Source: Saccostrea echinata (taxonomy: Eukaryota). From it: 64,000 nt of DNA. The translations under genes were made by a program, and so were the position numbers. Positions 11,785 through 13,739 of this stretch are shown piece by piece. Under the pieces are notes generated by a model. That model worked only from the letters and a program-made list of their open reading frames with translations, ran no database searches and had not been told where the DNA came from. The DNA is taken from positions 43,648,001 through 43,712,000 of the forward strand of contig NW_026889778.1 of assembly GCF_033153115.1 (NCBI RefSeq), in the 5' to 3' direction. The stretch's first letter is position 1. Each line of letters starts with the position of its first letter.

Positions 11785-11846
11785 TATAAAAAGTAGGTGA
11801 ATTAACGCAAACATGAGTTCAGTTTGTAGCATTGCAAGAGAGCAAG
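11785..11846 (+). promoter_or_regulatory. TATA box, initiator-like TCAGTT and short first exon of the peptide gene
   Basis: TATAAAAA at 11785, TCAGTT at 11819-11824, strong donor CAAG|GTAAGT at 11846/11847. Confidence 0.55.
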
Positions 11847-12519
11847 GTAAGTTCTTTTATAATTGAAAATCCTTTAGTTCAATGTCGGCCACGGGAAAAA
11901 GGCATAATTGTATTGTACACATTTATTAATAACATAGTGTAATAAATAAAGTAAATGTAAAGACATGACTGTGAACTCTTCCATTTTATGTATAGTTTAT
12001 TTATTTATATATTTCTTTCTTTCTTTATTTTTGCTTCTCATATATTTTAACTATGAAAAGGATAAAGCTGAAGGAATAAATTTTAGTTTTGTGTAACAAG
12101 CAGTGGTCGATTTCATAAATCCTTTAAACAATACAAATGGTGAAAAGCCAAAAAACACAGAACCCAATAAATGTTTCTTGTGATGAAAATTACATGATAT
12201 AAAAAAATTAAAGAAATTTAAATGCAGACGCTCTAGATCTGATGCTATTTTAATCGAAAATATCCCAGTTCACAAGTAACGAAGCAACCCAGGGCTGTTT
12301 AAAGAGTTAAAAGAGAAAATTGCCTCTAGGGTTCGGTGACCAAGACTCTGCTGATTAAAGAGAACGAAACGTGTAGATTCTGTGAATTAGTACATGTATA
12401 GAGAGGTCCATATTGTTGACAACAAAGTGCATGTGTTAAAATCAAATGGTTAAATAAGAGAGGCTTTATACAGGAAAAACTAATTGTTTTTTTTTTTTTT
12501 TTTAGTTTGACGAAAGACA

Positions 12520-13739
12520 ATGAAGTCAACTTGGTAAGTGTGATGCATTATTAAAAGAATGTACTCTGTACTCATTCAATTAATTTACGGCAATCCCGAT
12601 TTATTCGCATAAATAAATCAATAAATAAATGAATAAATAAAATAAGTGAATGTTTTAAAAAAATGCTGTTATTGCCGTGTCTTATCCTAGCAATCATTTG
12701 AAGATTATCTACCATAAATCAAGAGTCTTACTGTTTATCACGTAAATTTTTAATTTGACTTCAATGCAGTTAGTATTTTTTTTGGCATAGTTTATTTACA
12801 TAATGATAAGAATTCTTTTAACTTCTTATTTAATACCTGATTAAGGAATGAAAAAACAGGAAGAATATTTGTTTTACTTCTGTTTTACATAAAAAAAACC
12901 CTATCAGTTGTGGAATGGATCTCTTCATTTACAGGTTTTTTTTTCGCTCTAATCGTGTTTGGAATCTGTGCCAGTTTGCAAGGTTCAACTTTACGAGACA
13001 GTTCCGCAGTTGAAAATTCCAAGAGCGATTTTAAAAGGTTATGAATATAATGCAAAACAGTACAATATTTATTTTCTTGCTTTTCCTATGTTTTGAAATA
13101 ATATTTTATATAGTTTATNNNNNNNNNNNNNNNNNNNNNNNNNNNNNNNNNNNNNNNNNNNNNNNNNNNNNNNNNNNNNNNNNNNNNNNNNNNNNNNNNN
13201 NNNNNNNNNNNNNNNNNNNNNNNNNNNNNNNNNNNNNNNNNNNNNNNNNNNNNNNNNNNNNNNNNNNNNNNNNNNNNNNNNNNNACATCCTAGTTGAGCT
13301 TATATATTCATAGCAAGAAATATTAATAATTACATGTACAATTAACCGTAATACTCATGCTTTATATCTTTATTCAAATTCATTCAACATCACATCACTT
13401 TATATGTCCCCATTAATCCGTAATTGAATGTGGTTTTTGATTTACAGAGCTGGGGGTGTAAAGTTGACAAAATATGCATTGAGAAAGTTAGCAAGGAGTT
13501 TAAGACGCAGTGATTCACTGGCAAGATATGCTGTGAATCGGTTACAATATTGGTCTGGTGGACGTATCAGCGCTAGCAAAATTATTCAAGTCATAGATGG
13601 TGTAGCAGCTAGACTGAATCGGTATCAAACTGCAACCTGTGGATTTTTCGCAGATGTAGGAGTCTCCCTTGGTATTAATCGTAGTATTGCATATCAAATC
13701 TGCAACGTTGCTATCGATTTACTCGGATTAATTCTGTAA
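12520..13739 (+). CDS. Secreted cationic peptide precursor (candidate antimicrobial/cytolytic peptide); coding exons 12520-12533, 12935-13037, 13448-13739
   Basis: Canonical splice sites: tttag|12506, 12533|gtaagt, tttacag|12935, 13037|gttatg, tttacag|13448. Exons 3-4 join in phase as FFFALIVFGICASLQG-STLRDSSAVENSKSDF-KR-AGGVKLTKYALRKLARSLRR...ICNVAIDLLGLIL*. The exon 2-3 join needs T8 rather than the assembled T9; alternatively ATG 11813 splices in frame directly to exon 3. An N gap lies in the last intron. Confidence 0.8.

Follow-up and report, generated by a model that had tools for sequence, protein, structure and literature searches.

A transcribed and spliced gene of Saccostrea echinata for a putatively secreted, cationic helical protein with relatives in mussels and a brachiopod

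The stretch of DNA analysed here, referred to as the window, comprises 64,000 nucleotides of the genome of the bivalve Saccostrea echinata (contig NW_026889778.1, positions 43,648,001 to 43,712,000 of the forward strand). On its forward strand lies a gene that is transcribed, spliced and polyadenylated, and of whose reality there is next to no doubt. Its last exon encodes a strongly basic domain of 96 residues that is predicted to fold into five helices and that directly follows a Lys-Arg (KR) pair in the putative precursor. A reading made from the letters alone, hereafter the sequence-only reading, had proposed this gene as a candidate new family of bivalve antimicrobial or cytolytic peptides. 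The features of the gene and of its paralog are collected in Table 1.

Table 1. Features of the gene and of its paralog (positions are those of the window unless another locus is named)
Feature	Position	Strand	Remarks
Putative exon 1 (5' untranslated region, UTR)	11785..11848	+	TATA-like box and GT donor read from the letters
Exon 2	12506..12533	+	AG acceptor 12504-12505, GT donor 12534; paralog identical at all but 2 exon positions
Start codon	12520-12522	+	in exon 2, which encodes the first four and two-thirds codons
Exon 3	12935..13037	+	hydrophobic core of the putative signal peptide and an 18-residue pro-piece, closed by Lys and the first two Arg-codon bases
T run	12936..12944	+	9 T in the assembly, 8 in the X2 contig; sets the frame of the start codon
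Intron 3	13038..13447	+	GT..AG; holds the assembly N gap 13119-13284
Exon 4	13448..13775	+	last base of the Arg codon, 96 codons, TAA stop 13737-13739, 36-nt 3' UTR, poly(A) site
Predicted mature domain, 96 residues, cationic, five-helix	13449..13736	+	translation and AlphaFold2
Paralog	L002:1489-1779 (G000:C29)		some 105 kb ahead of the window gene, with the same exon layout

Transcript data were taken from four (X1, X2, X3 and X5) of five matching runs, which stem from two studies and whose recorded type, "RNA?", is a guess. Contigs of all four runs connect 13037 with 13448, the skipped stretch being bounded by GT..AG (the aligner wrote this joint as 13035>13446, a difference of +2), and the shorter side of the joint amounts to 38 letters in X1 and to 99 letters in X2, X3 and X5. 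Exon 3 is covered from 12937 to 13035 by contigs of X2, X3 and X5 and from 12998 to 13035 by one of X1; exon 4 is covered from 13446 to 13772-13776 by contigs of the four runs. The X2 contig, 474 letters long, additionally covers 12514-12534, runs on from exon 2 into exon 3, and carries 23 unaligned A residues beyond 13775. Splicing and polyadenylation mark such contigs as RNA. Mimicry of splicing by DNA is excluded, because the genome holds only two such loci, both with introns, and no intron-less copy. Further, the joint between exons 3 and 4 spans the assembly gap, which is thus wholly intronic, and the two exons are therefore continuous and in frame in the transcript. The run contigs depart from the assembly at a single coding position, 13571, where X3 and X5 show a synonymous C>T.

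These results agree with what the sequence-only reading had drawn from the letters. It had placed the dibasic KR exactly at the boundary of exons 3 and 4, and the Arg codon is indeed split, AG/A, by intron 3. It had named the absence of spliced transcripts as an outcome that would speak against it; they are present in all four runs. It had also remarked that a track of open reading frames (ORFs) displays the last exon only, and the prokaryote-style ORF list shows just that exon (13428..13739). As a separate observation, the same transcript, at an identity of at least 99%, occurs in runs X1-X4 and in X5, which stem from two studies and are labelled as two different organisms; the labels may be synonyms, or they may reflect hybrids or a mislabelled sample.

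The reading frame of the start codon depends on the T run at the beginning of exon 3. In X2, the joint of exons 2 and 3 is written 12534>12937, a non-canonical skip of 402 positions that equals the canonical GT(12534)..AG(12934) intron combined with a T run one letter shorter. Eight T let translation from the start codon at 12520 continue into the signal peptide; nine T, given canonical splicing, lead to a stop within exon 3. The contigs of X3 and X5 terminate exactly at the eighth T, which would fit variation of the run length among reads, and at this site the paralog, too, has one base less. The nine-T form may be an error of the assembly or a frameshift allele.

The proposed exon 1 found no such backing. 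It is covered by no contig in runs X1, X2, X3 and X5, and a counterpart is absent from the 4.4 kb upstream of exon 2 of the paralog, where local alignment scored 21 against a mean of 23 and a maximum of 30 for shuffled sequence. Exon 1 may be a 5' UTR exon. Two minor observations concern the same region. A start codon at 11814 in the putative exon would, after splicing to exon 2, open an upstream ORF of 12 codons that ends just inside exon 2. In addition, a low-depth contig of X2 (depth 5.9) spans 11869-12460, the proposed intron 1, in unspliced form and with G>A at 12293; it may represent pre-mRNA or carry-over of DNA.

Exon 3 translates as FFFALIVFGICASLQGSTLRDSSAVENSKSDFKR. The signal peptide in it was recognised by eye and from its counterparts in homologues, and the arrangement of signal peptide and short propeptide that had been proposed is upheld on that footing as a layout of the secreted type. 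Secretion and processing at KR are quite probable. The domain that would be released has a mass of 10.46 kDa and an isoelectric point (pI) of 10.5. The translation reproduces the composition read earlier (14 Lys or Arg residues against 4 Asp, a net charge of about +10, two Cys, and 96 residues followed by a stop): there are 4 Lys and 10 Arg, 4 Asp and no Glu, so that the net charge is +10. This charge is distributed as +8, +3 and -1 over the successive thirds of the domain. The amphipathic N-terminus is confirmed by the helix at residues 8-20, which has a hydrophobic moment of 0.90 and a net charge of +6, and the hydrophobic C-terminus by the last two helices. The pattern LG....A..I...I.LL, on which a likeness to bacterial proteins had been founded, is one residue off from the actual sequence. 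Where the first helix ends, residues 19-20 (13505-13510) form a dibasic pair (RR, KR or RK) in 8 of 12 aligned family members and could be a second processing site.

All searches with, and folding of, the window protein were run exon by exon. A word-based search returned one ORF from Logan, P0001, with 76% identity to the window domain. An exhaustive search of 1.84 billion representatives with a hidden Markov model (HMM) built from three sequences returned six proteins at E<=0.001, with E values from 1.5e-44 to 3.3e-05; all six align along the mature domain, and two of these are complete precursors, signal peptide and KR included. P0010 and two genes of the brachiopod Lingula anatina emerged from two further profile searches. 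The named members are XP_071126814.1 of Mytilus edulis (E 1.5e-44) and LOC106155512 and LOC106155516 of L. anatina, which lie on the same contig and for which profile A3 gives E values of 6.5e-28 and 4.6e-27; each carries only the label "uncharacterized protein". The other members are unnamed sequences from Logan or ENA. The HMM searches with the mature peptide that had been suggested as a check thus produced uncharacterized relatives in a mussel and a brachiopod. On the strength of these alignments, it is almost certain that the window gene belongs to one family with them, and XP_071126814.1, LOC106155512 and LOC106155516 are true homologues that share both the domain and the precursor layout of the window gene.

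In each of the four full-length relatives (P0002, P0005, P0011 and P0012), an N-terminal hydrophobic segment is followed by a pro-region and by KR immediately preceding the domain. Mytilus and Lingula have a strongly acidic pro-region; the pro-piece of the window protein, with a net charge of +1 by hand count, is not acidic. In P0001, P0003 and P0004, which are ORFs of last exons in genomic contigs, the domain begins directly after an Arg, which suggests a shared intron position. Alignment A3 comprises 12 sequences: the window domain, its paralog, P0001-P0007, P0010 and both Lingula genes. Eight positions are invariant in it (L18, L32, V48, V52, A62, F67, G75 and R78), and conservation is highest in the C-terminal part of the domain. 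The first third carries a net charge of +3 to +10 in all 12 members.

The cysteines divide the family into two clades. The window domain, the paralog and P0001-P0004 (six of six) have Cys64 as well as Cys85; in P0005-P0007, P0010 and the two Lingula genes (six of six) both are replaced, by Ala or Ser and by Tyr. In total, five of the aligned members have two Cys, the paralog has three, and six have none. This all-or-none pattern fits a putative disulfide that would bridge the last two helices.

None of the family libraries searched accounts for these proteins. In Pfam, the best match of the window domain at E<=10 is DUF6898, with an E value of 0.89, which is not a real family assignment, and no Pfam family is common to more than one of the 12 members. 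NCBIfam gave nothing real (E 0.17 and 0.11 to a flagellar hook-associated model), nor did a sequence search of the PDB, in which profile A1 matched RelI at E 0.64 and A3 matched designed helical repeat proteins, at best E 0.012. Searching the paper library by identifier and by motif found no mention of family members, and the titles and abstracts that topical searches listed describe known bivalve peptide families, none of them a family such as this one. The sequence family is new, and its fold possibly so; the broad kind to which it belongs, that of convertase-processed, cationic, helical secreted proteins, is known. The proposal of a new bivalve family therefore stands as regards novelty and falls as regards its restriction to bivalves, given the two genes of L. 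anatina. The domain was also said to differ from oyster defensins, big defensins and macins. Its two cysteines and its lack of a Pfam match set it apart from the Cys-rich peptides of bivalves (defensins, big defensins, mytilins, myticins and macins), a distinction drawn without direct comparison with individual named peptides.

The genome contains two copies of the gene, on the same contig and 105 kb apart, the paralog lying upstream; the queries were the domain, the profile of the family, the peptide of exon 3 and a DNA segment of 621 bases. Exon 3 of the paralog is 74% identical to that of the window gene at the protein level. Exon 4 of the paralog is one base short about 33 bases in, so that the frame of exon 3 runs into a stop after 14 codons of exon 4, where the conserved frame begins; this deficit could mark a pseudogene or an assembly error. 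Two such single-base frame problems in the assembly would hide both copies of the gene from annotation. The ratio of nonsynonymous to synonymous substitution rates (dN/dS) between the window gene and the paralog is 0.45. In the comparison of window positions 13461-13736 with L002:1501-1776, dS is 0.88 over the first 42 codons compared and 0.136 over the last 50, which are 92% identical in nucleotides; this contrast points to gene conversion in the 3' half or to constraint at the nucleotide level. A further 60 short DNA matches elsewhere in the genome fall on a AAATAAAT-type low-complexity stretch of intron 2 (12607-12660) and are often paired in inverted orientation, a few kb apart; the stretch may belong to a dispersed repeat.

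AlphaFold2, supplied with three sequences, modelled the window domain with a predicted local distance difference test (pLDDT) score of 89.4 and a predicted template-modelling score of 0.83. The model has helices at residues 8-20, 22-36, 42-55, 64-73 and 78-95. The whole Lingula precursor, modelled from 12 sequences, has helices at 53-65, 68-79, 85-99, 107-116 and 121-134, with pLDDT of 83-94 in the blocks of the domain and below 50 in the pro-region. In both runs, which were independent, helices 1 and 4 are preceded by the same single-residue bridge. The window domain is thus predicted to be a compact five-helix bundle, and the same five helices are predicted for the Lingula precursor.

Structure prediction followed by Foldseek had been proposed as a check for a saposin-like fold. 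Foldseek returned no match at E<=0.001 for either the PDB or BFVD. With VIA-align, run against 48,161 chains, the best score of the window model was Z 5.7 (5xnc_A, 65 residues aligned, root-mean-square deviation 2.6), and that of the Lingula model was Z 5.1. These values are not matches, because helical models commonly reach Z 13 from arrangement alone, the noise level that VIA-align itself states. The three structure searches of the PDB were judged on the top 50 entries of each, and among these listed matches there was no saposin, NK-lysin, AS-48 or other bacteriocin. Saposin-like proteins have six conserved cysteines that form three disulfides; the present family has two Cys or none, and no Pfam saposin match was obtained. 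A saposin-like identity is not supported.

The domain has counterparts in its general design. NK-lysin, the amoebapores, AS-48 and the leaderless bacteriocins are small, cationic, membrane-active proteins built as bundles of four or five helices, and the modelled window domain resembles saposin-like proteins and saposin-fold bacteriocins in being a small cationic helix bundle, while differing from the former in its cysteines, as described above. The precursors of classical antimicrobial peptides, for example the myticalins of mussels, offer another comparison. The Mytilus and Lingula members likewise combine a signal peptide, an acidic spacer, KR and a cationic product; unlike in such classical precursors, the product is a (predicted) folded domain of 96 residues rather than a short linear peptide, the gene has two copies in place of a hyperdiverse repertoire, and the pro-piece of the window protein is not acidic.

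A third comparison is with the nemertean cytolysin A-III and the parborlysins. These are secreted lophotrochozoan proteins of about 95 residues, about 10 kDa and pI 9-10.4, predicted or measured to be helical, whose C-terminal helix is needed for lysis and which are Lys-rich, with six Cys in three disulfides (PMC6410017). A protein of the size and charge of the window domain can therefore be lytic. The window domain is like them in length, mass, pI, predicted all-helical structure and hydrophobic C-terminal helix pair, and unlike them in having two Cys and in being Arg-rich (10 Arg against 4 Lys). A-III and the parborlysins were not among the matches of the family's profile searches, and no search with their sequences was made.

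An important question is what the released domain would do. As a whole explanation, we tentatively favour, at somewhat under an even chance, a precursor that consists of a signal peptide, a pro-piece ending in Lys-Arg and a cationic five-helix domain of 96 residues serving as a host-defence or cytolytic effector. The precursor would enter the secretory pathway, and a protease of the furin or prohormone-convertase type would cut after KR. The Arg- and Lys-rich amphipathic first helices of the released domain would then bind anionic surfaces, and its hydrophobic C-terminal helix pair would engage lipid, with a host-defence or cytolytic effect. Taken by itself, a membrane-active defence function is plausible, at rather less than an even chance. 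Several observations weigh against it. Many antimicrobial families of bivalves are expanded and fast-evolving; the present gene has only two copies in the genome, its domain is 74-76% identical to the mussel-type P0002 and P0001, and its conservation extends to a brachiopod, which is not what a typical antimicrobial family would lead one to expect. One member, P0004, has a net charge of 0 and a pI of 6.8. The best 19-residue Kyte-Doolittle window of the domain reaches 1.37, under the value of a typical membrane-spanning segment. Among pore-formers, colicin S4 (Z 4.7) and colicin N (Z 4.3) matched the window model in VIA-align within the noise. Finally, the signal peptide was called by eye, and in the assembly as written the start codon is out of frame with it. 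The copy number, the identity to mussel-type sequences and the reach to a brachiopod fit a conserved ligand about equally well. The domain might accordingly be a secreted signalling ligand, a helical protein of prohormone-like or cytokine-like kind that a convertase releases and that acts on a receptor and not on membranes. Such a ligand is unlikely. It would also explain the eight invariant positions common with Lingula, the presence of two Lingula genes on one contig and a dN/dS of 0.45, and the succession of signal peptide, acidic spacer and KR is a prohormone layout too. Against this, no known hormone or cytokine family was matched in Pfam, and the very hydrophobic C-terminal helix pair, together with the conserved cationic and amphipathic N-terminus, would be unusual for a soluble ligand. 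What probability the defence and ligand readings leave falls to other secreted roles.

Three further explanations fare worse. The gene might be a frameshifted, non-functional allele of the assembled animal at a locus in decay, the paralog being broken as well. The assembly does have nine T where the frame needs eight, exon 4 of the paralog does lose a base and run into a stop after 14 codons, and the ends of the X3 and X5 contigs at the eighth T would fit variation in run length; however, the in-frame form with eight T is present in the X2 contig, both differences lie in or beside homopolymer runs, where long-read assemblies often err, and the dN/dS of 0.45 and the 92% nucleotide identity of the C-terminal half argue for retained constraint. 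A decaying locus is thus improbable. More improbable still is that a short linear peptide is the active product, with a second dibasic cut after residues 19-20 freeing an 18-residue cationic helix and the remainder serving as carrier or chaperone. The recurrence of the dibasic pair in two-thirds of the family and the strong amphipathicity and charge of helix 8-20 would suit this scheme, but the pair is missing from four of the 12 members, among them the two of Lingula, the site lies within a confidently predicted, packed helix (pLDDT 93 for the block 11-20), and the C-terminal part, which would be a mere carrier, is the best conserved. Lastly, descent by horizontal transfer from a bacterial-type bacteriocin or a saposin-like protein, an ancestry that the sequence-only reading had thought worth testing, is barely credible. 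The nearest language-model neighbours of the window domain in the protein atlas are unnamed hypothetical proteins of Bacillota, 73-100 residues long, with scores of 0.91, 0.88 and 0.87, and a Bacillota hypothetical protein is likewise the best structural neighbour of the atlas model of the Mytilus protein, at a template-modelling (TM) score of 0.41, where all structural rows are below 0.5. Such atlas scores are at the level that shuffled proteins attain, since by the tool's own account these reach 0.9 in 4-10 of 100 cases, and an atlas search of named clusters with the Mytilus protein gave no usable match. The gene, moreover, has at least two confirmed spliceosomal introns. No bacterial homologue appeared in the exhaustive HMM search at E<=0.001, whose six matches all run along the mature domain and include two full precursors with signal peptide and KR, or in the profile searches at E<=1, which yielded only ENA sequences and Lingula. 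The two cysteines of the domain, against six in saposin-like proteins, and the lack of saposin, NK-lysin and circular bacteriocins among the listed PDB matches point the same way, and neither bacterial ancestry nor likeness to bacteriocins is upheld.

If the favoured effector reading is correct and the function is membrane-active, the gene would add a folded, disulfide-poor five-helix effector family to the innate immunity of molluscs and brachiopods, as well as a tractable scaffold of 10 kDa. A broader version, which we consider somewhat unlikely, would make these proteins an ancient lophotrochozoan family, spanning at least bivalves and brachiopods, of convertase-released, cationic five-helix proteins with a fold absent from the solved structures, which would permeabilise membranes as host-defence or cytolytic effectors and possibly be distant relatives of A-III and the parborlysins. 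If true, this would establish a structurally new class of defence proteins in animals. Were the domain instead a ligand, it would represent an undescribed conserved secreted factor of lophotrochozoans.

The surroundings of the gene in the window contribute little. Of 14 ORFs of at least 110 residues, the Pfam scan covered seven, with five at 36292-40595 and two that span N runs set aside, and among the seven it found only sub-threshold matches, to Csm1_N and PHD. Because there are just these two, the neighbouring ORFs are uninformative on the gene. Besides the gap in intron 3, the window contains other N runs of 129-237 letters, at 3312-3440, 10246-10482, 23956-24108, 44752-44927, 47903-48053 and 48391-48544.

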